Sequence record: MZ443769.1
Reading direction: 5' to 3' (one strand)
Length of the DNA: 64,000 nt
Position numbers and translations under genes: made by a program. Position 1 is the stretch's first letter. Every line of letters starts with the position of its first letter. The notes under the pieces were generated by a model that did not search any database, was not told where the DNA came from, and saw only the letters and a list, made by a program, of their open reading frames with translations. Below, piece by piece: positions 12,641-32,544 of the stretch.

Positions 12641-13411
12641 ATGAGCAATGTAGATAAAACAATGCCTCAAGGTAAGTGGGAATTCAACGAGCCTGTTGCT
12701 GCTGTGTTTGATAACATGCTGGCCAACTCGATTCCTTCTTATGACCGTATGCGTGACCTGACGTTTCGTCTGGGTAAACGTTTCGTGACACCTGGCTCAG
12801 CGATTGTTGATCTCGGTGCATCACTCGGTCGTGCTATCGAACCATTCTGTGAACACTTCGGTCCGTACATGTATCATCATGCAGCAGACCGTCCTGAACC
12901 AGATTCTGAAACAGGCAATCTCTATTCGCTGTATGAGACTGCTCCTGCAATGCGTGAGCGTCTCGCACAGAACGCAGTGTTGAACGCAGCCGAAGCGAAA
13001 CTCGAATCAGAATCGCTTGTGGACGTTGATACGTTCCGTTTCAGTGAGCAAGTCGAATGCTCTTTGATTCTCAGCGTGTTAACTTTGCAGTTCACTCCGA
13101 TTGAACACCGTCAGCACATTCTGGAAAAGGTCTATGACTCTTTGCAGTCTGGTGGTGCATTCATTCTCGTTGAGAAAGTTCTCGGGGATGATAATTATCT
13201 GGACAAGCTGCTGGTAGATACCTACTACAGCATGAAAGGTGATAACGGTTATTCACAAGAAAGCATTGCGACTAAGCGCAAGTCACTCGAAGGTGTTCTC
13301 GTTCCAGTGAAAGCCGCGTGGAATGAAGAACTGCTCCGTAAAGCGGGCTTCAATCGCGTCGAATGTTTCTATCGCGATCTCAACTTTGCAGGTTGGATTG
13401 CTGTTAAATAA
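12641..13411 (+). CDS. cmoA: carboxy-S-adenosyl-L-methionine synthase (CmoA family)
   Basis: WEFNEPVAAVFDNMLANSIPSY, VDLGASLG, LTLQF, GGAFILVEK, NGYSQESIATKRKSLE and LLRKAGF...FYRDLNF align along the full length with CmoA. Confidence 0.9.
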   Translation: MSNVDKTMPQGKWEFNEPVAAVFDNMLANSIPSYDRMRDLTFRLGKRFVTPGSAIVDLGASLGRAIEPFCEHFGPYMYHHAADRPEPDSETGNLYSLYETAPAMRERLAQNAVLNAAEAKLESESLVDVDTFRFSEQVECSLILSVLTLQFTPIEHRQHILEKVYDSLQSGGAFILVEKVLGDDNYLDKLLVDTYYSMKGDNGYSQESIATKRKSLEGVLVPVKAAWNEELLRKAGFNRVECFYRDLNFAGWIAVK

Positions 13412-13436
13412 ATCTGTAAACAGTAGAGGTTAGAGC

Positions 13437-14309
13437 ATGAGTTCTACAGCGGTCATACGCGAGAAAGTTCGCTCGGCATTATTTGCGAGTCATAACAAGC
13501 CTGTCGATATGCGACAAGCGTTGATGGACACTTTGAGTTGGATTCCGAAAGAAGACCAAGTTACTGTGTTCATGTCGGGTGGCATTGATAGTCATGCTTG
13601 CTTGTTTGCTTGCATCGACCTCGGCCTCAAAGTTAACGTGCTGTCGTTCACACTCGACTCACACGAAAGCTCTGACTTCAAGGCAGCGAGACACGCAGCC
13701 GAAGTTTTCGACCTTGACTTCACGCCGATCGTTCTTCCAACGAACGAAGCCCATCTGAAAAGCTGGGTACGTTTCGCAGTACACAAGCTCGGGCTCACGA
13801 ACAAAAGTGAGATCGAATGTTCTTGGCCGCTGTACACCGCAATCCGTCATCTCGAAGGAAAGACCAAACATATCGTACTCGGTCTTGGCGGCGACTCGTA
13901 CTTCTTAATGGCAAAGAGCGCTTCGATGCACTGCAAAGACTTAGTGTTAGAGCAACGTCGAAAAGCTACGCGCCGTGTGCTGTCTCAGAACGTTCTCGTT
14001 AAGCGTGAAGCTTTTGCTCGTGGTATCTACGCGCATCTTCCGTACTTCGAGTTCGGCCGCACTTACGCAGAGCTGCAAATGGAAACCGACTTTAAAAAGA
14101 TCAACAGTCCGCAGAAGTCGTTTTACAATCAGGCATTCCCTGAGTATCGCAAGCGCTGTAAAGTACGCGGTCACCAAAACTTCCAGCTGGGAGACACTAA
14201 CATTAGCGGCATCTTTAGCGATGTGTTGTTGAAGTCCGACTGGAACACAAGAAACTTGAAAGCAATCGTTGGCGTATACAATGACGTTGCATCAGGAATC
14301 TGTAAATAG
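13437..14309 (+). CDS. asparagine-synthetase-like ATP-dependent amide ligase lacking the glutaminase domain
   Basis: PP-loop FMSGGIDS, SDFKAARHAA, IVLGLGGDSYF; 290 aa with no N-terminal Ntn domain. Confidence 0.82.
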   Translation: MSSTAVIREKVRSALFASHNKPVDMRQALMDTLSWIPKEDQVTVFMSGGIDSHACLFACIDLGLKVNVLSFTLDSHESSDFKAARHAAEVFDLDFTPIVLPTNEAHLKSWVRFAVHKLGLTNKSEIECSWPLYTAIRHLEGKTKHIVLGLGGDSYFLMAKSASMHCKDLVLEQRRKATRRVLSQNVLVKREAFARGIYAHLPYFEFGRTYAELQMETDFKKINSPQKSFYNQAFPEYRKRCKVRGHQNFQLGDTNISGIFSDVLLKSDWNTRNLKAIVGVYNDVASGICK

Positions 14310-14316
14310 TAATTTG
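14299..14316 (+). promoter_or_regulatory. overlapping motif I (TCTGTAAATA) and motif II (TAGTAATTTG) upstream of the DPA peptide
   Basis: Both recurring motifs overlap about 60-77 nt before ATG 14376. Confidence 0.6.
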
Positions 14317-14375
14317 AGTAAGCACTGATAATCAGTCTGCTCTTAACATAAACCCAAATCCTTAAGGAGCGCATC

Positions 14376-14525
14376 ATGCGTCATACCGACCCAGCAGTAC
14401 GTTTTAACGATCCAGCCATCACTGACCCAGCAGCCCGTTTCGATCCGGCCGACCCTGCTGATCCAGCAATCGGTTTCGATCCGGCTGACCCAGCAGATCC
14501 TGCTGACCCGGCTGCTCGCTTCTAA
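14376..14525 (+). CDS. 49-aa Asp-Pro-Ala repeat peptide (absent from ORF track)
   Basis: AAGGAG RBS at 14364; MRHTDPAVRFNDPAITDPAARFDPADPADPAIGFDPADPADPADPAARF; synonymous codons vary between repeats; terminator follows. Confidence 0.85.
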   Translation: MRHTDPAVRFNDPAITDPAARFDPADPADPAIGFDPADPADPADPAARF

Positions 14526-14541
14526 TAGCGAAACTTAATAC

Positions 14542-14571
14542 AAGGGGGCTGCTCATTGCAGTCCCTTTTTA
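14542..14571 (+). terminator. intrinsic terminator after the DPA peptide
   Basis: GGGGCTGC-TCATT-GCAGTCCC then TTTTT. Confidence 0.8.
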
Positions 14572-14593
14572 CTTTCCTGTTGAGGAACGTGCT

Positions 14594-15232
14594 ATGTCTT
14601 TTGAGCTTGTAAACATTCTGCCGATACTGTCGCAATCAACTACAGTTCATCGTGCAGCCGACGGCACTGATGTTCACATCGTCCGAAACTTCTTCACACA
14701 TACGGAATGCGAAGCACTAATCGCTGAGGGCATTCAGTATCTCGAACCGAGCCGTGTTGGTGGACCGAACGATACAACTAAGATCGATAAAACAGTTCGC
14801 TCGTCCTCTACTGCGATGTTAAGCGAAGTATCTCAACACCCTGCTGTACTCGAAGCTATTCGTCGCATTGATGACGCATACGGTTACCCACATCTGTTCA
14901 GCAACCCGCTGCAACTCAATCGCTATCAAGTCGGTGAAGAGTTCGTAGCGCATCACGACTGGCATGACCCTGTTCGCCAGCATGATCGTATTCAACGTGA
15001 AGGCCAACGCACTTGGACCTTCTTGATGTACCTCAACGATGACTTCGAAGGAGGTCAGACTGAATTCCCGTTGATGGATCTCACAGTAACTCCTGAGCGC
15101 GGTATGCTTGTTCTGTGGAACAACTTGCTTGTTGACGGTTCAGTCAATGAGACAACGCTACACGCATCGAAGCCTGTAACGTCAGGTACGAAGTTCATGA
15201 TGACCAAGTGGTTTAAGAACAAAGTGCTGTGA
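14594..15232 (+). CDS. 2OG-Fe(II) oxygenase, prolyl-4-hydroxylase family
   Basis: FFTHTECEALI, VRSSSTAML, LQLNRYQVGEEFVAHHD (HxD), TFLMYLND..EGGQTEFP, TLHASKPVTSGTKFMMTKW. Confidence 0.9.
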   Translation: MSFELVNILPILSQSTTVHRAADGTDVHIVRNFFTHTECEALIAEGIQYLEPSRVGGPNDTTKIDKTVRSSSTAMLSEVSQHPAVLEAIRRIDDAYGYPHLFSNPLQLNRYQVGEEFVAHHDWHDPVRQHDRIQREGQRTWTFLMYLNDDFEGGQTEFPLMDLTVTPERGMLVLWNNLLVDGSVNETTLHASKPVTSGTKFMMTKWFKNKVL

Positions 15233-15238
15233 TAATCT

Positions 15239-15258
15239 TGGGTAGCTAAGGCTGCCCA
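15239..15258 (+). terminator. hairpin, GGGTRGC/GCTGCCC family
   Basis: TGGGTAGC-TAAG-GCTGCCCA. Confidence 0.6.
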
Positions 15259-15283
15259 TTGTCGTATCTAAGGTTCAGGAAAG

Positions 15284-15293
15284 TCTGTAAATA
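15284..15293 (+). promoter_or_regulatory. motif I putative phage promoter
   Basis: TCTGTAAATA intergenic, 40 nt before ATG. Confidence 0.6.
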
Positions 15294-15323
15294 CAGAACA
15301 AGATTCCTCTGAGGATAACTCAA

Positions 15324-15932
15324 ATGATAGTTCGTATTATTGACGGAGATATTGGTGCGACGTATGTTGCCGAGCAACTGCAAGCTGCTGGCATTGAGTG
15401 TACAGTTCATTCACCAAACAATCCCCGTGCTCGTGCGCGTTACGCACCTTATCCTTCTATGTCTATTAGTCTTGACCAACTTCTTATCGAGCGTCACATC
15501 GGTGATGTACTCGGTACGTATCGCGGTATCTTCCTGATTAGTAGCTATGCAGGTTCTTTGATTGCAAACAGCATGATTGACCTTTGTGGTCAGTCCAACA
15601 ATATCATTACGTGTGATAAACTCGACTGCGGTAATGTGCCTGTTGCAGCCACCAAGCTTTCTGTAAATATCTACAAGAAGCAACGCCAGCTGGCTCGCAT
15701 CGCTCGTCGTGTTCCGCACTATGAGTCCGACCATGAGTTTATCATTGCGGACAATACTGTTCAGGCTCTCTCATATCCAGAGCTAGTACAGAAAGAAGAT
15801 ATCGAACTTAACAACAAGCCGAAGTTTCTTTCTAGTCCTTCGCTGATCGTTGCTGCAAAGCGTCTGGGTATCAAAAGCAACACGTACCATAACTATGCCG
15901 GCCTTGTGAAAGAGTTTCTCGCCGCGCGGTAA
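15324..15932 (+). CDS. hypothetical protein with degenerate Rossmann-like N-terminus
   Basis: MIVRIIDGDIGATYVAEQLQAAGIECTV has beta-alpha-beta pattern; GAGGA RBS. Confidence 0.6.
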   Translation: MIVRIIDGDIGATYVAEQLQAAGIECTVHSPNNPRARARYAPYPSMSISLDQLLIERHIGDVLGTYRGIFLISSYAGSLIANSMIDLCGQSNNIITCDKLDCGNVPVAATKLSVNIYKKQRQLARIARRVPHYESDHEFIIADNTVQALSYPELVQKEDIELNNKPKFLSSPSLIVAAKRLGIKSNTYHNYAGLVKEFLAAR

Positions 15933-15942
15933 TGAGGATAAG

Positions 15943-16206
15943 ATGATTAATCGCTTCCAAATGAAAAAGACTCCGACACTTGATGCTTGTCAGTGGAACG
16001 GAGAGAACGTTGAAGAGATGGACGAGTTTCTCAACGGTAACGGCTACGTTGTTGGTCGTTATGTGCAACTCGGTGTTCTTGATGATCACGGAGTACCGAC
16101 TATCGCTAACGTGTCTGTAGGTAACTATGCAGTGCGTCACGAAGACGGTACGGTTGAAGCAATGACAGCGACCGAACTGTTTGACAAATATGTATTGGCT
16201 GACTGA
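15943..16206 (+). CDS. conserved small phage protein
   Basis: KKTPTLDACQWNGEN...GNYAV...F.KY pattern common in phage ORFs. Confidence 0.7.
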   Translation: MINRFQMKKTPTLDACQWNGENVEEMDEFLNGNGYVVGRYVQLGVLDDHGVPTIANVSVGNYAVRHEDGTVEAMTATELFDKYVLAD

Positions 16207-16211
16207 GGTAC

Positions 16212-16670
16212 ATGATGAACCTGTTTTCTATTCTGAAACAGCAAGTGAAGAAATCGCTGACGACAGAAGCAGCGCTCGAACCAGAAGTACGCGCACTGTT
16301 TGACTGGCGTTACTCTGTAGACGTCAAAGGTCAGATGTACATCATCGGTAAAACTGGCGCGAACACCTGCTTCTATATCGAACCGGGAACAGTTGAGCCT
16401 ACCGCATGTTATCCCGATGCGTTGCTGGCAAAAATTGACGAGTGGGGAACAGCGAAATACGTTTCCTACTCCGTGTTCTTCAAGCACTTCGATAGTCCTG
16501 TTGCAGAGAATATCAAGACGCTTGAGAAAGCACAGACGGGTAAGCCGAAGAAGTTTAAGAAGGGTTACTTCATCTGTGGTCTGACGCCGAAAGGCAAACG
16601 TGTGAAGTTGTTCAGACTGCAACAAGGTCTGAGCGGTATGCAATGGGTTGCAGTGGAGCCTAAGAAATAA
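16212..16670 (+). CDS. hypothetical protein
   Basis: GAGG RBS. Confidence 0.7.
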   Translation: MMNLFSILKQQVKKSLTTEAALEPEVRALFDWRYSVDVKGQMYIIGKTGANTCFYIEPGTVEPTACYPDALLAKIDEWGTAKYVSYSVFFKHFDSPVAENIKTLEKAQTGKPKKFKKGYFICGLTPKGKRVKLFRLQQGLSGMQWVAVEPKK

Positions 16671-16684
16671 TGTAGGAGAGTACG

Positions 16685-17183
16685 ATGAAACAACAACTGC
16701 TTGATCGTGGCTTCGACCACGAACGATATCATTGCTGGTTAAGTGAGACACAGATGACTGTGCCTCTATTCGGATTTGATCGTCAACTTCATGGCGTTCA
16801 AGTCTACACACCAGACGCACCGAAACAAACGTCGAATCCGAAAGATGCTCGTTACTTCACGCGCACGTTCGGTGGCAAGCAGTTGGTGTGGGGAACAGAA
16901 ATTGAACCTATACGGGTCGACCGTATTCTTAACTGAGTCCGTGTTCAAGGCATGTGCTGTTCATCGTCTTGGACTCAACGCTTGGTCTGTATTAGGTTCT
17001 AATGTCAACGATGCTCTGTACCTTCAACTGCAACTGCTTGGCCTGAGATTTGTCTGTCTCGGTGATGCTGATAAAGCGGGTGAAGAGTTCAGTCAAACGT
17101 TTGGTCTTGGTGCAGTATCAAAAGACCTTGACGAAATGACTGACGCAGAGCTACTGGATTTAACTCGTCCTTTCTTGAGGTAA
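16685..17183 (+). pseudogene. TOPRIM-domain (primase-like) gene split by a +1 frameshift near 16898-16901
   Basis: Frame of 16685 gives VPLFGFDRQLHGVQVYTP..RYFT..VWGTE; frame of 16776 continues VFLTESVFKA..LGS..CLGDADKAG..KDLDE. Confidence 0.75.
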
Positions 17184-17185
17184 CT

Positions 17186-17608
17186 ATGGAACATAAAGTA
17201 AGAATCCGTATCATCGGACCTGTCGGTTGCGGCAAGTCAGAGGTGTACGTGCAATTGGTGAAAGCTCTCGCTATGACCAACGCGCGTGTTGTGCATCAAG
17301 ACCCTAAAGCTTGGGACCTGATTGCGCAGACTACTGGCCGTGCGGATAGCAACGAAGAACAATTCAATCCAGAAGTAACGATTGAAGAAGTCTGCATTCG
17401 CACCGACCCGAAAGCGTCACAGAATCCGATCATGCAGTTCTTTGCGTATGCGCATCTGCCTCCACATCTGCAAGGCGTTAGCCGTGAGATTGCGCTTCTC
17501 GCCCAGGAAATGGATCAGCGTCTGCCGCAAGGTCCTGAGAAATCTGCGGGTCTGCGTAAGTTGCTCGAGGCGAAAGACTGCTTAGTACGGTCGCTTGTAC
17601 GCGAATGA
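17186..17608 (+). CDS. two-part protein: P-loop-like N-terminus plus Acb2/Tad1-like helical hairpin
   Basis: GPVGCGKS; FAYAHLPPHLQ...LPQGPEKSAGLRKLLEAKDCLVRS. Confidence 0.55.
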   Translation: MEHKVRIRIIGPVGCGKSEVYVQLVKALAMTNARVVHQDPKAWDLIAQTTGRADSNEEQFNPEVTIEEVCIRTDPKASQNPIMQFFAYAHLPPHLQGVSREIALLAQEMDQRLPQGPEKSAGLRKLLEAKDCLVRSLVRE

Positions 17609-17997
17609 TTGTATCCGCAGACAACTGCCCTCCACTTAACGGCGCAGCGTATTGGGAACGCAGTCAAGATCCGTATCATGTTGATGCGTTCCCAAACGAA
17701 GAAGCTATCACAGGTCCTGGCATTGCAACAGGCATTCGTGCGTCTGGCTGGATGGCTATCGGCTGGCATGAAGACTGTCTCGCTTTTGTTGCGGACGGTT
17801 CTGAGTATGAAGATGATGGTATCGACTACATCCACTTCATAAGTTTTAATGGACATGAAGTGCGTATCCCTCGTGATGCACCATATCTGTCTGAACTTAT
17901 TCAGCGCCATATCAGCTACATCGAGGCTAAAGCTAAAGCCAAACCTCGTAGCGTTCTGTGTCTGCTGCGCTCAATCTTTTATCCTGTTCGAAACTAA
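17605..17997 (+). CDS. hypothetical protein
   Basis: ATGA overlap. Confidence 0.6.
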   Translation: MIVSADNCPPLNGAAYWERSQDPYHVDAFPNEEAITGPGIATGIRASGWMAIGWHEDCLAFVADGSEYEDDGIDYIHFISFNGHEVRIPRDAPYLSELIQRHISYIEAKAKAKPRSVLCLLRSIFYPVRN

Positions 17998-18006
17998 GGA
18001 ACTCCA

Positions 18007-18426
18007 ATGCGTCACACGCTTACGTGCAGTAAAGAATGTGAAACAGAATATCGTATCACATCAGGTGCGGATTTCAGTTCACGCTATTCAAGTCCAGAAC
18101 TCTTGTTTGAAACTGCGCGTGAGCTTGGCATTGGTCTGACTGACCAAGAACAGAAATGGTTCCGTGAACTGTCTGATCGTTGCCTCGGTGATCTCTCTAT
18201 GGAGATTCAGAAGTTTGACACTGAGGAAGAGGTTGCAGATGAACTCAAAAACTTGACGCACAATCAAGGCTTTGAGATCTCTGAGGACGTATACGATGAT
18301 TGCATCGCAGCAAAGTCTATCATCCACGTATTCGCTTTCACTGAAACGCAGAACGGCTTCTACGACTTCATTGCATCGACAACAACCGACGCCTTAGAAG
18401 CAGCGCATGGCTTCATCTTCGAGTAA
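18007..18426 (+). CDS. hypothetical protein
   Basis: AAGGA RBS, terminator after. Confidence 0.7.
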   Translation: MRHTLTCSKECETEYRITSGADFSSRYSSPELLFETARELGIGLTDQEQKWFRELSDRCLGDLSMEIQKFDTEEEVADELKNLTHNQGFEISEDVYDDCIAAKSIIHVFAFTETQNGFYDFIASTTTDALEAAHGFIFE

Positions 18427-18432
18427 CAATAC

Positions 18433-18455
18433 AGGGTGCCTTAGGGTGCCCTTTT
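18433..18455 (+). terminator. intrinsic terminator with tandem G-U pairs
   Basis: AGGGTGCC-TTAG-GGTGCCCT-TTTCT. Confidence 0.7.
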
Positions 18456-18579
18456 CTGATCGTATACAACTAAAATAAGCCTAAAAGGACCGAGTAGAAT
18501 CATGCGTAAGGCGTATAAAACGATGCGTAGGCAGCGTAGAAACACCACCTTTTTCTTGAGCAGTGCATTGCGCTTGAAA

Positions 18580-18589
18580 TCTGTAAATA
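18580..18589 (+). promoter_or_regulatory. motif I putative promoter for dam
   Basis: TCTGTAAATA 28 nt before ATG. Confidence 0.6.
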
Positions 18590-18607
18590 CTGATAAAGGA
18601 GAGATAA

Positions 18608-19450
18608 ATGACAGCAATAAGCCCAATCCGATATCAAGGAAATAAGCGCAGCCTAATACCCTTGATTTTAGAGAACGCTCCTTCTGTTAAGGACTGTTCT
18701 CGTTTCATTGATGCGTTCGGCGGTAGTGGTACTGTCTGCTTGAATATGCCTCAACCGTTTCGCGTGTACAACGAACTCAGTCCTCAGGTATTTGAGATCG
18801 TCAAGATGCTGTCAGAGCAAGACCCGAAGAAAACTCTGTCGCAGATTAAGCGTGTTGTGAAACACTGGGCGCTGACGAACAGTAGTGAAACGAGTTACGA
18901 CGACTTCCGTGTTCACGTCCAGAAGAAGCGTACCCCGTTACTGCATTACGTTGCACACAGACACTCACACTCCAACATGTTGCGCTTCAATCAGCAAGGC
19001 ATATACAATGTGCCATTCGGTGCTCGTGGTCTGATTGGAAAGTTCGATGAACTTGAGCATGAGCTTGTGCAATTCCATGAGCGTATGCAAGGTGTGCATC
19101 TGACTAACCTGCGCTACAATGACTTGCTGGGTAAAGTGCATAACCAGCTTAACAGCAACACGTTCTGCTACTTCGACCCACCGTATCTGGCAAGTGGTGC
19201 AATGCAATACGGGAAGTGGACTGAGCGCAACGAGCGTAACCTGCTTTCGATGCTGGAACATCTGACTCGCCTTGGCGTTCCGTGGATGTTGAGCAACGTT
19301 GTCGAGCACAGACACTTCAAGAACGATTTGTTGAAACGTTGGTTGAAACGTTGTGCAACGACCGTGCTCTATCCGAATAAAACATACGCACTGGCAAATG
19401 GTCAAGGCGGTTCACACGGTACTGTTGAAATTTTAGCAATGAACTATTAA
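18608..19450 (+). CDS. dam: DNA adenine methyltransferase (Dam/T4-Dam family)
   Basis: SPIRYQGNKRSL, FIDAFGGSGTV, FCYFDPPY. Confidence 0.9.
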   Translation: MTAISPIRYQGNKRSLIPLILENAPSVKDCSRFIDAFGGSGTVCLNMPQPFRVYNELSPQVFEIVKMLSEQDPKKTLSQIKRVVKHWALTNSSETSYDDFRVHVQKKRTPLLHYVAHRHSHSNMLRFNQQGIYNVPFGARGLIGKFDELEHELVQFHERMQGVHLTNLRYNDLLGKVHNQLNSNTFCYFDPPYLASGAMQYGKWTERNERNLLSMLEHLTRLGVPWMLSNVVEHRHFKNDLLKRWLKRCATTVLYPNKTYALANGQGGSHGTVEILAMNY

Positions 19451-19459
19451 GAGGTCGCT

Positions 19460-20170
19460 ATGGAAGATATTCAAAAGCAGATTGAAGTGTTGAAGACAAT
19501 CCGCATTGATGATGTGAGCGCATTCAAAGGCATTATGGATTATATCCATGCAGCACCAGCAGATCAGAAGCCTACAGAAGAAATGCAGAATCAGATCTGT
19601 GCTAGCCTCAAACTCAACTACGATCACTGGCGTTACTACAACGAACTGGCGCTGGTACTGTCGTACGGGGTTCCGTCTGCGATGACTGCAATAAATATTG
19701 CATGTTCGATGTTCAACGGACCTGACATCCGTGAAATTCTTGAACGCTACCAGCACGTCGAGAAAGAGCTTATCATCACTGCTGCTGAAATCGGAAATGA
19801 ATGGCTGCTTGATAACGGTAAGTTGATCACTGCGCGTAAAGCGATTGACAATTTGGTTGCGTTGTATCTTATCGACAACATCGACGAACCGGAAAGTACA
19901 CGTTGCATTGCTTTCCCATCTATGCCTGAGATGCACCCGTATCTTGTACAGGTATTTGAACTCGTAGACAAGTACGGTCTGAACGATAATGGGCGCTGGC
20001 GTACTGCGTACAGAACGATTGGTCAAACTGACCGCAACTTCATGCTGGATTATCCGACTGACCTGTCTGAAAAACAGAACCCTGTTATCAAAACAGATAT
20101 CGGGACAATCTATTTGCTTGCAGCACCTAAACGCGGTGACACTAACAGCAATCATCTTCGCTCTATCTGA
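19460..20170 (+). CDS. hypothetical protein
   Basis: GAGG RBS. Confidence 0.7.
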   Translation: MEDIQKQIEVLKTIRIDDVSAFKGIMDYIHAAPADQKPTEEMQNQICASLKLNYDHWRYYNELALVLSYGVPSAMTAINIACSMFNGPDIREILERYQHVEKELIITAAEIGNEWLLDNGKLITARKAIDNLVALYLIDNIDEPESTRCIAFPSMPEMHPYLVQVFELVDKYGLNDNGRWRTAYRTIGQTDRNFMLDYPTDLSEKQNPVIKTDIGTIYLLAAPKRGDTNSNHLRSI

Positions 20171-20177
20171 GGCGCTC

Positions 20178-20549: not shown

Positions 20550-20550
20550 A

Positions 20551-21201: not shown

Positions 21202-21202
21202 T

Positions 21203-21718: not shown

Positions 21719-22103
21719 CGACGATGCAGTCCGCAAAATGTATCAAGCCCGCAACCAACTCGTTGAACAAAAGATGCGAGAAATCTGGACTATGCGTGGT
21801 TGGACTATCGAGTGGGACTGGCACTGTGGATTTTGCGACGATGCCGAGTTCTTGTTTGATGCTGAGGGCAAGCGTCTATACTCCATAGAAAATGGTATTC
21901 CTCATGAAACGTCAATCGCTACGTTGCTGGACAAGCATAAGCTGAATGTCACGTACATGAAGAAAACTGTAAAGATCATAAACAAGCAAGCTGATAACCC
22001 TGTTACGGGGTCTGGTGATTGCATTTATATGGCATACATCAATTGGCTACTAGCCTTCGAAAAGCAGAAATTTGAGGAGAAGAATAAGTGCGCTGCGAAT
22101 TAA
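21687..22103 (+). CDS. hypothetical protein
   Basis: Overlapping operon ORF. Confidence 0.6.
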   Translation: MYQKLDTKKPDDDAVRKMYQARNQLVEQKMREIWTMRGWTIEWDWHCGFCDDAEFLFDAEGKRLYSIENGIPHETSIATLLDKHKLNVTYMKKTVKIINKQADNPVTGSGDCIYMAYINWLLAFEKQKFEEKNKCAAN

Positions 22104-22606
22104 CCGAACTGCCTATCGCTGTCGATCAAGCAGAAGCAATCATGGCCAGCGTGTTTGCTTTGGCGGTTGCTTCTAAATCAAAGCGCCGTGCTACTGCTGC
22201 AATGATGATTCAATTCATTGACGGCTTTCCGATGATCAAAAGCAGCGGCGTTAACGGTACTGTGCCGGGTTCGTCAAACGTTTGTGAAACACCAGACCTG
22301 CTGACAACGCTGCCTCATGTTATTCATGCGGAAGCGAACTGCCTTGACCGTCTGAATGATTACAACTCTCTGGTGACTGACCAAGACATTCTGTTTTGCA
22401 CAGACAGTCCGTGCCCAGATTGTTTGCGTCAACTGACAGACGAAGGCGTTAAGACCGTTGTGTATGCGCGTGAGTATCGCCTGACTGATCATCTCGACGC
22501 TTCTGATATTCGCATGTTCTGCCTCGATCTGAAAGCTGTTGAACAGCGTATGATTCGTAGCATCGAACGTATGTCGGAAGTTATCTCTACAACACCAAGT
22601 GTCTAA
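22088..22606 (+). CDS. dCMP deaminase family
   Basis: HAEAN and SPCPDC zinc motifs, SGVNGT. Confidence 0.85.
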   Translation: MRCELTELPIAVDQAEAIMASVFALAVASKSKRRATAAMMIQFIDGFPMIKSSGVNGTVPGSSNVCETPDLLTTLPHVIHAEANCLDRLNDYNSLVTDQDILFCTDSPCPDCLRQLTDEGVKTVVYAREYRLTDHLDASDIRMFCLDLKAVEQRMIRSIERMSEVISTTPSV

Positions 22607-22634
22607 CAGACCAATAACGTAAGGGTAAAACCAA

Positions 22635-23390: not shown

Positions 23391-23398
23391 GGAACAAC

Positions 23399-24033: not shown

Positions 24034-24039
24034 AACCAT

Positions 24040-24067
24040 TGGGGTGGCTGTGTGCTGCCCCATTTTT
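24040..24067 (+). terminator. intrinsic terminator, GGGTGGC/GCTGCCC family
   Basis: TGGGGTGGC-TGTGT-GCTGCCCCA-TTTTT. Confidence 0.8.
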
Positions 24068-24081
24068 GTTTGGAGAACGAA

Positions 24082-25706: not shown

Positions 25707-26013
25707 TGCCTTTAAGTACATCATGTGCGTATTGAAGGGAAGTAACCGTGAGAACGTAGATGTGTATCTGCCTATCATCTTCCCGCAGCATATCATGCAC
25801 AGTGATATGAAGGAATGTATGCAGCAATACTCCATGAGTAGTGGCTATCGTGATAACAAATACGATCAGCATATCGAATTCGTATCTGCGGGTTTCATTT
25901 CAATGGACATGCAGACGTGCTTCGGCGAATCTGAATCAATGAGCTTGAAGTCTCGACCAGAAGACGCAGAGATCATTCGTACATGGAATCAAAATCATGG
26001 AAAAGTTTCTTGA
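25699..26013 (+). CDS. conserved small phage protein
   Basis: VSAGF..CFGESESMSLKSRPED motif. Confidence 0.65.
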   Translation: MYDAFKYIMCVLKGSNRENVDVYLPIIFPQHIMHSDMKECMQQYSMSSGYRDNKYDQHIEFVSAGFISMDMQTCFGESESMSLKSRPEDAEIIRTWNQNHGKVS

Positions 26014-26332
26014 GCTACTGAGCACTTTCTTTGACTCTCCAGCCAGTGCGTTCGTCGTGCCTTTCGTTGTGATCAGCTATTTCATCATTGAGCACAAATA
26101 CGAAAAGCGGACCTTACGCCAGTCTCGCGCTGTGTTTGCAGACGGCTGGAATCCTGCTAAAGGCACAGAGTATAAACACAAGTGGTGGCCGGGTAGACGT
26201 TGCAGTATGTGCTTCACGTCGAACAGTCCGAACGATAAGTTTGTACCGAGTGTAGTGATCAACATCGCAGGTGTTGGTGTACGTGAGATGAATGCTAACA
26301 AATTCCGTTCACGTTATAAGGAGATCGTATGA
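25997..26332 (+). CDS. membrane-anchored hypothetical protein
   Basis: N-terminal hydrophobic segment. Confidence 0.6.
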   Translation: MEKFLELLSTFFDSPASAFVVPFVVISYFIIEHKYEKRTLRQSRAVFADGWNPAKGTEYKHKWWPGRRCSMCFTSNSPNDKFVPSVVINIAGVGVREMNANKFRSRYKEIV

Positions 26333-26634
26333 TTCCTTATGTGTATCTCGAACAGTCAACAATCGAAACAATGAAGTCTGTATTCGGTTGTGACAAACCT
26401 TTCGTTGTCGCCAGCACAATGAACATCGCTGGGCATAAAGGTGATCGTGTTTACTTCTCTAACGGAGCTAACACTGTCATCGTTCCTCGTCTGCAAGGCT
26501 TCTCTATTGGTCAGGTCTACTATATCGCACTCGATAACAATGTGTACGAGTGGAAAGCAGGCACTGAATACGATCAACCGCAAGTAACAGATAACGCCGT
26601 AGTACAGGCTTATCGCATCACACCTATTCGTTAA
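26329..26634 (+). CDS. hypothetical protein
   Basis: ATGA overlap. Confidence 0.6.
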   Translation: MIPYVYLEQSTIETMKSVFGCDKPFVVASTMNIAGHKGDRVYFSNGANTVIVPRLQGFSIGQVYYIALDNNVYEWKAGTEYDQPQVTDNAVVQAYRITPIR

Positions 26635-26645
26635 CAGGACTAACA

Positions 26646-27746
26646 ATGTCAAAACAAATGCTTGACCTCCGCAACCCTCAGGACTTTGCTTTCTTTAACA
26701 TGCACAGTGCTGATGGCCAGTACATCTCTGTGTGTGACACTATCCTGCGTGAAGGTACGCTTGAGTGGGATGCAGCACGTACAGACGATCAGTGGCAGAC
26801 AATCATCGGTGTGGGTATGCAGTTGGTCAACACGCTGATCGCTTTCCCTGCGTTGCTGTCTGCGCGTAAGAACTGGGTAGCAGCCGTTGATGAAATGTGC
26901 TGGATGGCTCGCGGCGAAACGAATATCAAAACCCTGGGTTCTAAAATCTGGGACGAGTGGGCTGACGAAAACGGCGAGTGTGGTCCTATCTACGGTGAGA
27001 TGTGGCGACGTTGGCCTGATGTGAAAGCGTTTTTCGATGCAGCTGGTGCTTTACCTGCATTATGGTCTCCTGATCATATTCGCAATCAAGCGGAAATCTC
27101 GCGTATGCGTGAAGACGGATATCTCGAAACGCCTATGTCAGACGGTCGCATTCTGTTTGAAGGTCAGATTGACCAGTTCGCTAATGCGCTCGAACACATC
27201 ATGGCGCGTTCGCGCTCTCGTCGTATTCGCGTTCAGGGATTCAACCCGTCTTATGTGAACATGCAGGGTCTGCCTCCGTGTCATACCGAGTTTGAATTCA
27301 ACGTTACTCAGGCGACTGATTACGAAACCGCACAAATGAACTGGCGTGGGTTCGCACCGCAGAAAGACAGTCTGCATATCACTGTGCAATTACGTTCTAA
27401 CGACTGCCTGCTTGGGCGTCCCTTCAACATCATGGGCTACAGCGCCATGCACCAGTTGATTGCGAAGTGGGCTGGCCTGAACGTTGGTAGCTTCACGTTG
27501 AACTCGACTAACACTCACATCTATACGCACCACGTTGAAGCATATAAAAAGCAGCGTGAGCAGTACGTCGAACTTGAAACGCAGATGAAAGAGACAGGCA
27601 ATCCTATTCAGTATCCGTTGCTGGAAATCTCTGATGAAGTGCTTGGTCTGACTGCGAAAGAACTTCTCGATAACGTGAACATCGACTGGTTCCAGCTTCT
27701 CGACTATTCGCCTAAACCTGCTGTTCGTGGACGGGTGACTAAATGA
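26646..27746 (+). CDS. thyA: thymidylate synthase
   Basis: WDEWADENGECGPIYG, SRRI, LPPCH, RSND..PFN, THIY. Confidence 0.92.
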   Translation: MSKQMLDLRNPQDFAFFNMHSADGQYISVCDTILREGTLEWDAARTDDQWQTIIGVGMQLVNTLIAFPALLSARKNWVAAVDEMCWMARGETNIKTLGSKIWDEWADENGECGPIYGEMWRRWPDVKAFFDAAGALPALWSPDHIRNQAEISRMREDGYLETPMSDGRILFEGQIDQFANALEHIMARSRSRRIRVQGFNPSYVNMQGLPPCHTEFEFNVTQATDYETAQMNWRGFAPQKDSLHITVQLRSNDCLLGRPFNIMGYSAMHQLIAKWAGLNVGSFTLNSTNTHIYTHHVEAYKKQREQYVELETQMKETGNPIQYPLLEISDEVLGLTAKELLDNVNIDWFQLLDYSPKPAVRGRVTK

Positions 27747-28396
27747 AACTCCTGTTGATCAAACGTGTCAGTGCGTTCCTATACGTCGGCTATGCAGAGA
27801 GCGTTCTCGATATCCCGCGTCGAGGTGTTGAACCTCTTAACTTCGACATTCAAATTGATCTGCCGAACAGCGAACGTGAGATAGTAGGTCTGCGTATGGA
27901 TGCTCGCTGTATCTATCATCTGCCTCACAACTGCTTCCTCATTCAGGGTGTTGATACTGATCTCATTCCTCAAGAGATGCCTGCTTCGATGAAGAGTCTG
28001 TGTGCTGAGAACATGGCAATCTTCCTCAACTCGACTCACGGTCGCAACCAAGTTGCTATCAATGACATGCTGGACGAACTCAGTGCAGCAGAGCAGGTTC
28101 ACCCGCACTGGCCAGAAGAAGTGATTCATGCTGGTGCTATTCTGACAGAAGAAGCTGGTGAATGTCTGCGTGACTGTGTAACGTATGATGAAACAGGCAT
28201 TCCTGATCTGATAACGTCCATGCGTCAAGAAGCAGTGCAGACAGGTGCAATGGCGATTCGCTTTATTAAGAATCTCAAGACCTCTCAGAAGCGTACTATG
28301 CCTGCATCTGCGTTACGTTTAATCCTCGAAGGTGATCTCGATGACAGCAGCAAGCTGGCTGAAATCAAACGCCTCATGAATAACGGACCCGTCTAA
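27743..28396 (+). CDS. protein with C-terminal MazG-like NTP-pyrophosphatase domain
   Basis: ILTEEAGECL...MRQEAVQTGAMAIRF EExxE/E pattern. Confidence 0.55.
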   Translation: MKLLLIKRVSAFLYVGYAESVLDIPRRGVEPLNFDIQIDLPNSEREIVGLRMDARCIYHLPHNCFLIQGVDTDLIPQEMPASMKSLCAENMAIFLNSTHGRNQVAINDMLDELSAAEQVHPHWPEEVIHAGAILTEEAGECLRDCVTYDETGIPDLITSMRQEAVQTGAMAIRFIKNLKTSQKRTMPASALRLILEGDLDDSSKLAEIKRLMNNGPV

Positions 28397-29277
28397 TGCA
28401 ATTACTCGCATACATTCCTGCTGCAACGACTGGCGTATTCCGTACGTTGCGTGTTCTCGACCTCGGACTTGAACCGGGTCACGTAGAAGAACTGAAACTG
28501 TTCAACTGCGTCTTTAATAATGTTGAAATCGTTAGCACCGAAGTGCCTGGCGTCTCCGACATTCTTATCCGTGATGCGTATAGCTGGCGCGTCGACCCTC
28601 ACTTCATTCGTCTCGATGCTGAGTACAGTTACTGGTGTGGTAAGCATACTCCATCCATTGAGCAGATGCTTGATGCGCATATCATGAAAGGTCATGTGCC
28701 GGATTTGATCGCGGACTTCGACCAGTTCATTGCGTGGCTCAAAGCAGAACTGGCGAAGCTGCCGCGTGTTGCTACAGACGACCTAAAGTTCGCAGGCTCT
28801 GAGATGAAGCACGGCAATAACCGTTACGACTTGTGGTTATTGTTCAAACACTATCTGATGCTTGACGGTCAGATGACTCTCACTCACAGTCCTGAAAACG
28901 ATATCGGCGTTAGTGACCTGTTTATCTCTGATAAAGGTGTACGCTGGTGGTTGGTCGAGCACAACAAAACGCTGATGGACATTGCACGTTCATCTAACAT
29001 GCTGGCGGCCTATATCACGTTTGATACTCGTCGCGGTGCGCACTATTCGTTTGTGTATGATGATGGCCAGACAGTTGTACGCCACGTCGATGAATCAGAA
29101 TTCATGCACATGGCAGTTCATGGCCAATTCCCGAAAGTGTCCATCACTGAGTCGGACACTGTGTACGATCTCAACTTTGACTTCGCTGAGTTCTTCACTG
29201 AGAAGTATCACAAGTACAACAACCACGTATTCATTGGCGGTCAAAGTGAAGCTCGCGACCTTGTGCGTTTCATCTGA
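28396..29277 (+). CDS. hypothetical protein
   Basis: TAATG coupling, 293 aa. Confidence 0.7.
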   Translation: MQLLAYIPAATTGVFRTLRVLDLGLEPGHVEELKLFNCVFNNVEIVSTEVPGVSDILIRDAYSWRVDPHFIRLDAEYSYWCGKHTPSIEQMLDAHIMKGHVPDLIADFDQFIAWLKAELAKLPRVATDDLKFAGSEMKHGNNRYDLWLLFKHYLMLDGQMTLTHSPENDIGVSDLFISDKGVRWWLVEHNKTLMDIARSSNMLAAYITFDTRRGAHYSFVYDDGQTVVRHVDESEFMHMAVHGQFPKVSITESDTVYDLNFDFAEFFTEKYHKYNNHVFIGGQSEARDLVRFI

Positions 29278-29292
29278 CGGCTAGGCCTCTTG

Positions 29293-29304
29293 CACAGTAA
29301 TTTA
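29293..29304 (+). promoter_or_regulatory. motif II putative promoter
   Basis: CACAGTAATTTA, identical 12-mer also at 46059 and 55321 on the minus strand. Confidence 0.6.
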
Positions 29305-29326
29305 GTCTAACCAAACAGGAGGCCGT

Positions 29327-29662
29327 ATGAATTACGACAAAGCAAAAGATTTTAAACCGTTCAAGTATCTCTCACCTCCTTCTGAGGCACCAGTGCGAGG
29401 CTTCTATGGTACTGTCACTCGTTTGCGCACACTGGACGTTAACATAAACGAAGATACAGCCGAGTTCGTCTTTACTAGGGAAGAGTTAGACTCAATGGAT
29501 CGAGGAACACTGACGTTTCGCGCTAAGGACAGCGGAAGCTCTATCGCAATCAAGAAATGCTCTGTGTCTGGTTTGAAAATGGTAATTACGCTTGAACGAA
29601 GAGTGTTGAACTTCGGTAAAGTCCAAGTCGAGTGGAAGAACGTCGTCCACTATGAATGGTAA
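29327..29662 (+). CDS. hypothetical protein
   Basis: AGGAGG RBS; CACAGTAATTTA motif upstream. Confidence 0.75.
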   Translation: MNYDKAKDFKPFKYLSPPSEAPVRGFYGTVTRLRTLDVNINEDTAEFVFTREELDSMDRGTLTFRAKDSGSSIAIKKCSVSGLKMVITLERRVLNFGKVQVEWKNVVHYEW

Positions 29663-29664
29663 TA

Positions 29665-29674
29665 ACTGTAAATA
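29665..29674 (+). promoter_or_regulatory. motif I putative promoter for the ParB-C5 transferase pair
   Basis: ACTGTAAATA intergenic, 44 nt before ATG. Confidence 0.55.
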
Positions 29675-29708
29675 CAGAGCATTCAGTAACTCATAAAGAG
29701 AATGTACA

Positions 29709-30413
29709 ATGGCAAAAATTGCTAAAGCAAAAGCAAAGGACGGGAAAAAGAAAGGCGCTATGGCTATTGATTTGAAATCTTTCAAGTCGGCTAAACAGCT
29801 TAAAGGCGCTAAGTACAATCCACGTTTCATTACAGACAGTCGCTTGAGCGCACTCGAAAGTTCGTTGGGTAGCTTCGGTGACTTGTCTGGCATCGTGTTT
29901 AACAACAGCGTCAGTTCAGGCGTTCTTATCTCCGGTCACCAGCGTCTCAAGTCAATCAACGATTGGGAAACGCGCATCGAACTCCAGCCTACTTCTGACA
30001 AGTACGGTACAGTCGCTTTGGGTTACGTTCATGCAACGCATCCGAAGTCGAGCAAGACGATTAGCATTCCTCTGCGTATCGTAAACTGGAACGATAAGAA
30101 AGCCGAGTACGCTGCGAACATTGCTGCGAATGCGCACGGCGGTGAGTTCGATAACAAGAAGCTTGCGAATCTGGTTGAGAAACTTGACCTGACTTCTATC
30201 AAGCCTCAACTGCTCGGACTCGACCCGCTGGAAATCCGTGGTCTGCAACAGAAGCTGAAATCACAAGCACTTGTTGAAGGCGAGAAACGCGCAGGCAAAA
30301 CTACTGGTCAGATGAACGGTAGTACGGGCGCATTCAAAGAATACACACCAGATGAAGTCGGCGATAAGCTGTCATGCACCTGCCCACGCTGTGGATTTAA
30401 GTTCGAGGGATAA
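29709..30413 (+). CDS. ParB/Srx-like N-terminal domain protein with C-terminal Zn knuckle
   Basis: LKGAKYNPRFI..LESSL..FG..LISGHQRL..ANIAAN; ends CTCPRCGFKF. Confidence 0.8.
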   Translation: MAKIAKAKAKDGKKKGAMAIDLKSFKSAKQLKGAKYNPRFITDSRLSALESSLGSFGDLSGIVFNNSVSSGVLISGHQRLKSINDWETRIELQPTSDKYGTVALGYVHATHPKSSKTISIPLRIVNWNDKKAEYAANIAANAHGGEFDNKKLANLVEKLDLTSIKPQLLGLDPLEIRGLQQKLKSQALVEGEKRAGKTTGQMNGSTGAFKEYTPDEVGDKLSCTCPRCGFKFEG

Positions 30414-30414
30414 T

Positions 30415-32544
30415 ATGATCATCAAGCCGCCTACAATGAAAGAGATCAACGCGCAAGACAACAATTGGCGTGGCATGAGCTTCTTCGCAGGCTGTGGTGG
30501 TTCTTCTACCGGTCTCAAATGGGCCGGTATTAACATCATCTTGAGTAATGAGTTCGTAGACGTGGCGCGTGAGTCTTATCAAGCGAACCACCCATCTACG
30601 TTAGTTCTCCCTCACGATATCCGTCGTCTCGACCCGAAGAAGATTATGCAGCACTTCGGGATGGGTAAGGGTGAACTTGATTTCCTCGATGGTAGCCCAC
30701 CATGCTTCACTGAGAACACTCTGATTCACACTGCTGAGGGGATGAAGTTCATCTCTGATGTTAATGTCGGCGACATGGCAATGACTTCTGTTGGTCGTTA
30801 TCATGAAGTGTACGATACTATGGTGCGTCCTTATGTTGGTACGATGCACAAGATCGAAACACTGCTCGGCGCGAATAACGCAACGCCTGAACATCCGTTC
30901 TTCATTCGCCGCGTTCAACCTACCGGCTTGTGGTCTGAACCTTTCTGGTGTGATGCGAAAGATGTACAAGAAGGTGATTTACTCTCAACACCTCGAACAA
31001 CTCCTGACATGGGTGCTGACGCTTATCATGGTCAAATGTCATTGCTGACGCCTGTCATTCAGAGCTGGGTAACTTTCCCTGAGTTCTGGTGGGCTATCGG
31101 TCATTGGTGTGCGCACGGTACTCTTGAAGTTGTGCAGGGTGTCGATGTTGTTAGCTTCGAATCGCACACAGCTCAGGAAAACGATCTGATTGAGCAGGTG
31201 TTTGATGTTCTGAAAATCAGTAGCATCAACAGCGTAGACACAACCGTTGACCAGCGCAAGACGTATCGCGTTGTCATGGATTCAGAACTGTTTGCGTTCC
31301 TGAGCAAGTTCGTGGCACAGGGTAAGAACAACCTGTCTCGTCGTCTGCCGTCGATGATCTTCCACTTAGCTACTGAACTGAAACAGCAATTCATTCTCGG
31401 CTATCTCGGTCGTGACTACGTTAGTGCAATGGGCATGAGCCAGTTGATTAGCACAGACAACCGTCGCTTCCTCACTGAAATGAATTACCTGACGTGCTCT
31501 GCATTCAACAGACCTCTGTTCGATGGTATGTTGTTCTCTGATGTGAACTACGGTTCAGCGCTTACGCCTCGTGATCGCAATCAGAAGAAAGAGCATGTCG
31601 GCTATCTGCTGCTGCAAGATGAAAACAATTTCTTCTACGAGTTCAACGATAACGATCCACATCTGTGGGTTCAAGTGATTGAGAACCTAGCGTATCAGAC
31701 AACCTGTGACGTGTACAACTTCTCGGTCAGTGAAGACGAGACGTATGTGGCGAACAGCATTGTCGTGCATAACTGCAAAGGCTTCTCGACTGCTGGCGTG
31801 AAAGAAGAAGGTTGGGGTAAAGAAGTCAAGTACAGCGAGAACAAGAAACAGCAGGTTGATGACCTGTTCGATCAGTATTGCCGTATGATTAGTGGCTTCC
31901 AGCCTAAAGTGTTCACAGCGGAAAACGTCAGTGGTCTTGTGAAAGGATCTTCTAAAGGTTACTTCCTTGAGATCATGAAAACGTTTGACGAGCTTGGCTA
32001 CTATGTCAAAGCACCGTTGATTAACAGTGCATGGCTTGGTGTTCCACAGTCGCGTGAGCGTATCATCTTCATGGGTGTGCGTAAAGACGTTGCACATGCG
32101 TTGGGATATCGCTCAATCGGTACTGCTGTGCCTGCTGTCGTGCCTGCTTCAAGCATGGCTGTGCTTGCTGATGCTCTGCCTAACATCCTGCGATACAAAT
32201 CGGCTGAGAAAGATATCATCAAGTATAAGCCCGCGATGAACGGACCTATGCCTACGATAACTGCTGCTGATGCGATTGCGTATGAGACGGCACGATTCTC
32301 TTCTGCTGGATTTATCGAGGACAACAAGGGCATTCGTCGTAAGCTTACGATTGATGAACTGAAAGTTGTTTCCGGTCTGCCTGCTGATTACAAGCTGGTC
32401 GGTAAGTTCGAACAACAGTGGGAACGTCTCGGTCGTATCTGCGTACCTCACATGACTCATGCTGCTGCGACTGCGTTGATCAATCATATTCTTGTGCCTT
32501 ACGCCAAGAAGAAGAAACAGAAACCGGGCGCTCTCTTCCGCTAG
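30415..32544 (+). CDS. C5 cytosine transferase (DNMT fold), intein-containing; candidate carboxymethyltransferase (CmoX-like)
   Basis: Motif I FFAGCGG, IV GSPP|C, VI ENVSGL, VIII VPQSRERI, IX RKLTIDEL, X LGRICVP (Arg instead of Asn); ATG at 30415 follows the ParB stop. Confidence 0.88.
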   Translation: MIIKPPTMKEINAQDNNWRGMSFFAGCGGSSTGLKWAGINIILSNEFVDVARESYQANHPSTLVLPHDIRRLDPKKIMQHFGMGKGELDFLDGSPPCFTENTLIHTAEGMKFISDVNVGDMAMTSVGRYHEVYDTMVRPYVGTMHKIETLLGANNATPEHPFFIRRVQPTGLWSEPFWCDAKDVQEGDLLSTPRTTPDMGADAYHGQMSLLTPVIQSWVTFPEFWWAIGHWCAHGTLEVVQGVDVVSFESHTAQENDLIEQVFDVLKISSINSVDTTVDQRKTYRVVMDSELFAFLSKFVAQGKNNLSRRLPSMIFHLATELKQQFILGYLGRDYVSAMGMSQLISTDNRRFLTEMNYLTCSAFNRPLFDGMLFSDVNYGSALTPRDRNQKKEHVGYLLLQDENNFFYEFNDNDPHLWVQVIENLAYQTTCDVYNFSVSEDETYVANSIVVHNCKGFSTAGVKEEGWGKEVKYSENKKQQVDDLFDQYCRMISGFQPKVFTAENVSGLVKGSSKGYFLEIMKTFDELGYYVKAPLINSAWLGVPQSRERIIFMGVRKDVAHALGYRSIGTAVPAVVPASSMAVLADALPNILRYKSAEKDIIKYKPAMNGPMPTITAADAIAYETARFSSAGFIEDNKGIRRKLTIDELKVVSGLPADYKLVGKFEQQWERLGRICVPHMTHAAATALINHILVPYAKKKKQKPGALFR
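30703..31773 (+). mobile_element. 357-aa intein with degenerate LAGLIDADG endonuclease, inserted before the catalytic Cys
   Basis: Starts CFTENTLI, block B ATPEHPF, ends ANSIVVHN with +1 Cys; blocks C and E read AIGHWCAHG and FILGYLGRD. Confidence 0.93.

Follow-up and report, generated by a model that had tools for sequence, protein, structure and literature searches.

What does an Erwinia jumbo phage do with a homologue of CmoA, the enzyme that makes carboxy-S-adenosylmethionine (Cx-SAM), together with an adjoining amide ligase and a distant gene of the DNA methyltransferase fold? We addressed this question in a window of 64,000 nucleotides, bases 1-64000 of Erwinia phage pEp_SNUABM_52 (MZ443769.1; a 261,095 bp jumbo phage), in which these genes form two loci 15.4 kb apart on the same strand. 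Both loci are 100% identical to that record and 98.5-99.4% identical to vB_EamM_Y3 (genus Sasquatchvirus), and the window genes discussed below are all encoded on the + strand, within a region of early and replication genes. A preliminary description of the window had proposed that the phage makes 5-carboxymethylcytosine (5cxmC) and amidates it. All the features that it names are found at the positions given for them. Our analysis supports this proposal at the level of sequence: the genes have the sequence features of CmoA, CmoX and CmoY, although CmoA scores under its equivalog cut-off. Moreover, the ligase belongs to a module with a proline-repeat peptide and a peptidyl-prolyl 4-hydroxylase (P4H), which appears not to have been described before, as does an intein placed directly before the catalytic cysteine of the transferase.

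The reference point for this analysis is the study of Yang et al (Nat Commun 2025; PMC12783734), which agrees with what the preliminary description says of S-B43. In this Synechococcus phage, CmoA, CmoX and CmoY together make 5cxmC and its glycine amide, 5gcxmC; the modification falls on GC, and the ligase SpCmoY uses glycine. R350 of SpCmoX contacts the carboxylate of Cx-SAM, the wild-type enzyme accepts only Cx-SAM, and the R350N mutant is inactive, so that candidate CmoX proteins are defined in that study by an SPPC motif plus R350. Of 5,615 such candidates, 4,257 have a CmoA nearby, 2,251 a ligase and 1,660 a ParBc protein, and the authors note that several of the ligase clusters probably use other amines. 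The main text of PMC12783734 does not mention Erwinia, inteins or oxygenases. Our full-text literature searches found no other paper on the CmoA/CmoX/CmoY system and no paper tying a prolyl hydroxylase to phage DNA hypermodification.

The preliminary description had pointed to a transferase gene with an altered cofactor-site motif and an intein, 16 kb away, and we find such a gene. An N-extein of 96 aa (30415..30702, +), carrying motifs I-III and the GSPP of motif IV, and a C-extein of 256 aa (31774..32544, +), carrying the catalytic Cys, ENV, QxRxR and the motif X sequence LGRICVP, flank a 357-aa intein (30703..31773, +). The likely start codon is the ATG at 30415 and not that at 30352; it has GAGGG upstream, abuts the stop codon of a ParB-like gene and is the start annotated in Y3. 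Spliced in silico, the transferase is 352 aa long and matches PF00145 (E = 8e-38), with motifs FAGCGG, GSPPC, ENV, QSRER and LGRICVP all located. Its closest solved structure is SpCmoX (8YF3; E = 8e-58), followed by M.HaeIII (1.5e-16), while M.HhaI scores ~3e-12. The SPPC motif occupies residues 94-97, with its Cys coming from the C-extein, and ERLGRICVP aligns to ERVGRMVPP of 8YF3, placing Arg317 (spliced numbering) on SpCmoX R350. Motif X therefore has Arg at the methylase Asn site (M.HhaI N304 = SpCmoX R350). With both markers of Yang et al present, assignment of this protein to the CmoX type is supported. The stretch between motifs VIII and IX fails to align with SpCmoX, so that no target sequence can be inferred from it.

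The intein is of class 1, with Cys1 in CFTEN, TPEH in block B and a C-terminal His-Asn in VVHN, and its C-terminal region matches TIGR01443 with a score of 26.7 against a cut-off of 15.6. Its scores for Pfam Intein_splicing and Hint_2 fall under their cut-offs, a search of it against the PDB gave no match, and its LAGLIDADG-like blocks appear degenerate, as judged by eye only. The junctions read GSPP/C...HN/CKGFS, with the +1 Cys serving as both the splice nucleophile and the catalytic Cys of motif IV. Because the intein interrupts the catalytic loop immediately before the nucleophilic Cys, the precursor is predicted to be inactive before splicing. The gene is in two pieces and contains an intein in 51 of 51 Erwinia, Dickeya AD1 and Yersinia records, and is in one piece in the Pseudomonas jumbo phage PaBG. 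Two further cmoX inteins occupy the same insertion point, in fHe-Yen9-02 (locus L009, 15292-16338; 37% identity to the window intein) and in L014 (4009-5181; 26%), and such low identity points to an intein that is ancient or else to several invasions of a single site. Separately, the C-terminal part of cmoX in L013 (5351-6051) matches as two pieces 44 nt apart, which may reflect a frameshift or a small insertion.

The other locus opens with cmoA (12641..13411, +), the CmoA homologue that the preliminary description had recognized. The 256-aa protein matches TIGR00740 (E = 2e-41), and among solved structures E. coli CmoA comes closest to it (PDB 4GEK; E = 6e-29); a Pfam search gave no match, the family being seen by the NCBIfam and PDB searches. 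The residues of E. coli CmoA that touch the cofactor have been set out by Byrne et al (PMC3663124), who single out Arg199 for its salt bridge with the carboxymethyl group. In a MAFFT alignment, the window protein retains Y39, D62, G64, S66, F137 and R199 (E. coli numbering; R213 = Arg199), and the D89 position is Glu, as it is in SpCmoA. The validated SpCmoA is likewise divergent, being 27.9% identical to E. coli CmoA. Independent support for the Cx-SAM reading of this gene family comes from L029, a 293 kb metagenomic phage contig that encodes a type II chorismate mutase (4718-5161; CM_2, E = 7e-16) between cmoX and cmoA. Chorismate mutase makes prephenate, the co-substrate of CmoA, and the L029 phage would thus raise prephenate for Cx-SAM synthesis with an enzyme of its own.

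An amide ligase of the PP-loop type, which the preliminary description had placed next to cmoA, begins 26 nt past the end of that gene (13437..14309, +). This 290-aa protein, which we call LigA and assign to type A, has its PP-loop SGGIDS at residues 47-52 and matches Pfam Asn_synthase (E = 3e-5) and QueC (E = 6e-5); it is homologous to the validated SpCmoY over 266 aligned residues (E = 2e-21). Both LigA and SpCmoY consist of the synthetase domain of AsnB without the glutaminase domain. An AlphaFold2 model of LigA built with 16 homologues has a predicted local distance difference test (pLDDT) score of 91, and in a fold search it came closest to AsnB, beta-lactam synthetase and carbapenam synthetase, in each case to the synthetase domain, with template-modelling scores of 0.6-0.69. 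The window system thus has the same three enzyme families as S-B43, with SPPC and the Cx-SAM-binding Arg in CmoX, a ligase lacking the glutaminase domain, and a ParB-like neighbour as in many of the published candidates. It differs from S-B43 in sequence (28% identity for CmoA, 27% for the ligase and ~35% for CmoX) and in layout, with one operon there and two loci here, 15 kb apart, and an intein in cmoX. Moreover, the window ligase lineage is tied to a Pro-repeat peptide and a P4H, both unmentioned in PMC12783734, and this difference in gene context argues for an amine donor other than glycine.

The preliminary description had made its reading depend on cmoA and the Arg-type transferase occurring together in related genomes, and they do. 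We delimited the clade with a backbone gene, a fragment of DNA polymerase I, which gave 57 records (48 Erwinia, 8 Dickeya, 1 Yersinia). Of these, 51 (48 Erwinia, 2 AD1 and 1 Yersinia) encode CmoA together with the CmoX-type transferase and a CmoY-type ligase, and the other six (Dickeya JA11, JA13, JA29 and JA33) have none of the three. Day et al (2018) had reported, without interpretation, that the cmo genes and a radical SAM gene are common to AD1 and Y3 and missing in the syntenic JA11; by that account the radical SAM gene (Y3_272/AD1_267), which lies outside the window, shares the presence and absence pattern of the cmo genes. PaBG (Baikalvirus) represents a related lineage of jumbo phages. 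Its homologues of the four proteins are 37-47% identical to those of the window and are encoded in a compact cluster (parB-cmoX-cmoA-orf-ligase), without intein, peptide or P4H and with a ligase of another type (37% identity). The split layout that the preliminary description had listed as new is thus real in this window, but as the order is compact in PaBG and in metagenomic relatives, the 15 kb separation is a rearrangement specific to the Erwinia/Dickeya/Yersinia clade.

A ParB-like gene precedes cmoX (29709..30413, +) and encodes a 234-aa protein with an invariant SGHQR and a C-terminal CPxC, matching PHROG 620 (E = 1.6e-32) and PHROG 498 (E = 2.4e-18). PaBG and nine metagenomic clusters (L012, L013, L014, L022, L023 and L026-L029) likewise have this gene directly upstream of cmoX. 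The protein is a candidate member of the ParB family, matched by these two PHROGs only: Pfam ParB (PF02195) does not match the window protein and reaches E = 0.057 in one of eight orthologues, PDB searches by sequence and by profile gave no match, and an AlphaFold2 model (pLDDT 48) was too poor for a fold search. The preliminary description had counted this partner among the novelties, but Yang et al already report a ParBc protein near 1,660 of their CmoX candidates; neither the core pathway nor the ParB partner is therefore new.

What appears new in the window begins with the ligase and continues downstream of it. A short open reading frame (ORF; 14376..14525, +), with AAGGAG 7 nt upstream, encodes an acidic 49-aa peptide of (DPA)n repeats, MRHTDPAVRFNDPAITDPAARFDPADPADPAIGFDPADPADPADPAARF, and is followed directly by a terminator-like GC hairpin and T run found in a hairpin scan (14542..14568, +). 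Synonymous codons occur within the repeats, both in the DPA units of the window and in its relatives. Next comes a 212-aa 2-oxoglutarate-Fe(II) oxygenase of the peptidyl-prolyl 4-hydroxylase type (14594..15232, +; PF13640, E = 1.6e-15), in which the triad H120, D122 and H190 and the 2-oxoglutarate-binding K200 are in place. Its best PDB matches are the Bacillus anthracis P4H structures 3ITQ and 5HV0 (E = 1e-23), with human C-P4H, the Chlamydomonas enzyme and PBCV-1 vP4H also among them. As the P4H family acts on peptides and the peptide ORF adjoins the gene, the repeat peptide would be the obvious substrate. PBCV-1 vP4H hydroxylates virus-encoded proline-rich repeats. The window enzyme shares the H-x-D...H...K set of this peptide-substrate family (3ITQ/5HV0; PBCV-1 vP4H 5C5T), but unlike in the other viral and bacterial cases its candidate substrate is a dedicated type of ORF, of 22-54 aa, beside the enzyme and in a DNA-modification cluster.

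The preliminary description had taken the link of the peptide and P4H to the cmoA operon as a hint, and our survey makes this hint much stronger. We gathered LigA relatives from IMG/VR, JGI metagenomes, ENA, Logan and NCBI assemblies; a ligase-profile scan of metagenomes gave one locus only. Every locus among these with LigA and P4H has a small X-Pro-[Ala/Glu] repeat ORF between the two genes, giving a fixed LigA-peptide-P4H module in 11 distinct lineages, with 11 distinct peptides of 22-54 aa. The repeats are (DPA)n in the window, Yoloswag, L024, L025, L031, L012 and L013, FDPE(M/I)T units in L026, DEPEEPE units in L014, (NPEI)6 in L027, (APEI)5 in L028 and (NPER/NPE)n in L029. Most of the 11 have one acidic residue per proline, and all 11 ORFs are preceded by a Shine-Dalgarno sequence and followed by a GC hairpin with T run. 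The gene order is parB-cmoX-LigA-peptide-P4H-cmoA in L012, L013, L027 and L028, where peptide and hydroxylase thus sit inside the cmo cluster, and parB-cmoX-cmoA-LigA-peptide-P4H in L014, L026 and L029. Between the window and L012, identity is 75% for LigA, 42% for CmoA and 47% for CmoX, indicating that the module moves as a unit between divergent systems.

A blind scan for small Pro-repeat ORFs gave a single hit in the 64 kb window and a single hit per LigA+P4H locus, always between LigA and P4H. The same scan found none in the 17 other cmo loci covered, be it those whose ligase is of another type or those that lack P4H, as do two lineages with type-A-like ligases (one of L022 and L023, which have DUF1611 instead, the other of L030), and none adjoining 79 unrelated phage P4H-like genes. 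The last set came from an IMG/VR scan with the P4H, which returned mostly distant oxygenases and served as a negative control. On the minus strand of L037 near 9832, a 60-aa (PVE)11 ORF lies ~4 kb from an unrelated phage P4H-like gene and probably belongs to a larger gene or to an unrelated one. In Salmonella phage Sen-NF (L002; PV359490.1, 108 kb) all coding sequences abut, with neither gaps nor overlaps, so that the record resembles joined coding sequences stripped of intergenic DNA, which would explain why no peptide ORF is seen between ligase and oxygenase there. Its relatives L025 and L031 do have the peptide: the whole module of ligase, peptide and P4H adjoins recA there, and no cmoA lies within 6 kb of it. 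The RecA-family genes of these two loci (L025 3482-5965 and L031 3497-5959) encode 820-827 aa, far longer than RecA, and may contain an intein.

The module sits at a variable site. Sister phages, with 85-88% identity in CmoA, carry different cassettes in the stretch from cmoA to a conserved 202-aa backbone gene. Y3, SNUABM_52 and Yoloswag have the type-A ligase, repeat peptide and P4H; SNUABM_35, 2, 5 and 30 have a different ligase alone (35% identity); Dickeya phage AD1 (L005, 1516-3433) has a DUF1611 protein and a third ligase type; and pEa_SNUABM_1 (L006, 1516-5612) has a 420-aa unknown protein, DUF1611, a pyridoxal phosphate-dependent enzyme of the alanine racemase fold and a ligase. A DUF1611-containing cassette is also found in L022 (5899-7873). 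The cassettes with DUF1611 or the pyridoxal phosphate enzyme may produce a different amine donor, and the site looks like an arms-race hot spot at which the final adduct is swapped. In Alexandravirus and Sasquatchvirus, the cassette is bounded downstream by the gene of the 202-aa protein (15324-15932), which gave no match to any family. We rejected it as a pathway member: it is a backbone gene of the clade, unrelated to the gene at the same position in PaBG (E = 0.11) and absent from Yoloswag.

Taken together, these comparisons lead us to read the window genes, with moderate confidence, as a Cx-SAM-dependent cytosine hypermodification system of the S-B43 kind, encoded in two early-gene loci and comprising four steps jointly. 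CmoA, given its homology and its conserved Arg199, would turn SAM and host prephenate into Cx-SAM. The transferase precursor would first splice out its intein, and the spliced CmoX, probably aided by the ParB-like protein, would then carboxymethylate C5 of cytosine in phage DNA to give 5cxmC, as its SPPC and Arg markers and its closeness to 8YF3 suggest. The AsnB-type ligase, by homology to SpCmoY, would adenylate the carboxylate of 5cxmC and couple an amine to it. Finally, the P4H may convert the repeat prolines to hydroxyproline, and the modified peptide, hydroxyproline or short fragments could supply the nucleophile. The likely role of the modification is to protect phage DNA from host nucleases.

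The identity of the amine is the part of this scheme on which we are most guarded. In the LigA lineage it is probably not free glycine, since the ligase comes as a fixed unit with a Pro-repeat peptide and a P4H. We tentatively propose, while regarding it as doubtful, that the hydroxylated peptide, whole or as hydroxyproline or fragments, is the amine donor, and that the DNA carries a hydroxyproline or peptidyl amide of 5-carboxymethylcytosine. A consumable donor is favoured because proline is the sole invariant residue of the repeats and there is no leader peptide, because the expression signals of the peptide suggest high stoichiometry, and because the alternative cassettes at this site have small-molecule enzymes by which other amines could plausibly be made. 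Ligation of the whole peptide would be unlikely if sites are frequent, since the window alone contains 4,076 GC dinucleotides on each strand. Carbapenam synthetase activates a carboxymethyl carboxylate by adenylation and transfers the acyl group to a pyrrolidine nitrogen. By analogy, this chemistry offers a precedent for coupling 5cxmC to the nitrogen of proline or hydroxyproline. The carbapenam and beta-lactam synthetases resemble LigA in fold, but their reactions are intramolecular and on small molecules, and they have an N-terminal domain absent in LigA.

The donor could instead be a common free amine (glycine, another amino acid or ammonia) in an otherwise S-B43-like core, with peptide and P4H as a separate rider in the cassette; the acidic hydroxyproline peptide might then be, for example, an anti-defence or regulatory factor. 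The use of glycine by SpCmoY (PMC12783734) fits this account, as do the lack of a conserved side-chain amine in the peptides and the frequency of P4H-type oxygenases as phage accessory genes (PHROG 61; 79 unrelated loci). We nevertheless think it rather unlikely: a mere rider is hard to reconcile with the placement of peptide and P4H between ligase and cmoA in compact clusters, or with a peptide found in 11 of 11 LigA+P4H lineages, none of 17 other cmo loci and none of 79 unrelated P4H-like neighbourhoods. In addition, the ten closest P4H homologues in a collection of 5.8 billion proteins lie on contigs equal in size to those bearing the ligase homologues. More improbable still is that the ligase acts on the peptide and not on DNA, so that ligase, peptide and P4H make a modified peptide while the DNA stays plain 5cxmC. 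The AsnB family does include peptide-modifying members, and lasso-peptide cyclases and AsnB-like enzymes act on Asp/Glu carboxylates. The Asp/Glu-rich repeats, with their one acidic residue per proline, and the generic fold matches of LigA (AsnB, beta-lactam synthetase, carbapenam synthetase) would suit such an activity. Yet LigA stands in the CmoY position with full-length homology to SpCmoY and is the sole ligase of these clusters, other CmoY-type ligases occupy the same site in sister phages, and the peptides have neither a leader nor a fixed acidic position (units DPA, NPE, APE and EPE).

Amidation of Asp to Asn in the peptide by the ligase was considered and rejected, as NPE- and APE-type peptides keep the ligase. 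The module does resemble the multi-core precursors of ribosomally synthesized and post-translationally modified peptides (RiPPs) in having a short repeat ORF, with its own Shine-Dalgarno sequence and downstream hairpin, amid tailoring enzymes. It differs from them in that only 3-5 residues precede the first repeat, leaving no leader peptide, and that the module has no protease and no recognizable RiPP recognition element. A last reading, which we hold to be very improbable, would take the genes as unrelated housekeeping functions, with CmoA serving tRNA cmo5U or SAM depletion beside an ordinary 5mC methylase and an asparagine synthetase fragment. It would agree with the public annotations (‘tRNA methyltransferase’, ‘DNA-cytosine methyltransferase’, ‘asparagine synthase’) and with the distance of 15 kb between the loci. 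It conflicts with the strict joint presence or absence of the genes across 57 records, their adjacency in PaBG and many metagenomic clusters, the missing glutaminase domain of the ligase, and the Arg at the motif X Asn site, given that SpCmoX with such an Arg takes only Cx-SAM (PMC12783734).

Several points weigh against the hypermodification scheme or its last step. The window CmoA scores under the equivalog cut-offs of its family (TIGR00740, 142 bits against 193.3; NF011995, 105 against 285), and the identity of LigA to SpCmoY is low. The papers we searched hold no report on DNA modification in Y3-like virions. The 11 peptides have no conserved amine beyond the N-terminus, and with no dedicated protease in the module the release of a donor is unexplained. 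An acidic adduct would make the packaged DNA more negatively charged. Finally, ligase, peptide and P4H could be linked because they are inherited together as a block that has a function of its own.

Between the two cmo loci, the window also encodes a D12-class (Dam-like) N6-adenine methyltransferase (18608-19450), a dCMP deaminase (22088-22606) and a thymidylate synthase (26646-27746) of 366 aa, ~100 aa longer than its Pfam model. We considered the Dam-type methylase, the dCMP deaminase and ThyA as pathway parts and rejected them as ordinary nucleotide-metabolism genes. The D12-class enzyme implies that the phage DNA may also carry N6-methyladenine.

Overall, sequence comparison supports the view that the core of this system is a further member of the one published in 2025, set apart by its module, its cassette swapping and its intein gating. 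The publication of the CmoA/CmoX/CmoY chemistry, in December 2025, concerned a single cyanophage, and the window places its genes in ~50 cultivated jumbo phages of Erwinia, Dickeya and Yersinia. These phages are under development against fire blight, and modification of their DNA would affect host range, restriction evasion and sequencing. The position of the intein would make transferase activity dependent on splicing. The LigA-peptide-P4H module offers a concrete lead towards DNA adducts of a new type and towards a function of viral prolyl hydroxylases. If the peptide is indeed the donor, this would be the first DNA base hypermodification with a gene-encoded side chain, and the repeat unit (DPA, DPE, EPE, NPE or APE) would vary the adduct among phages.

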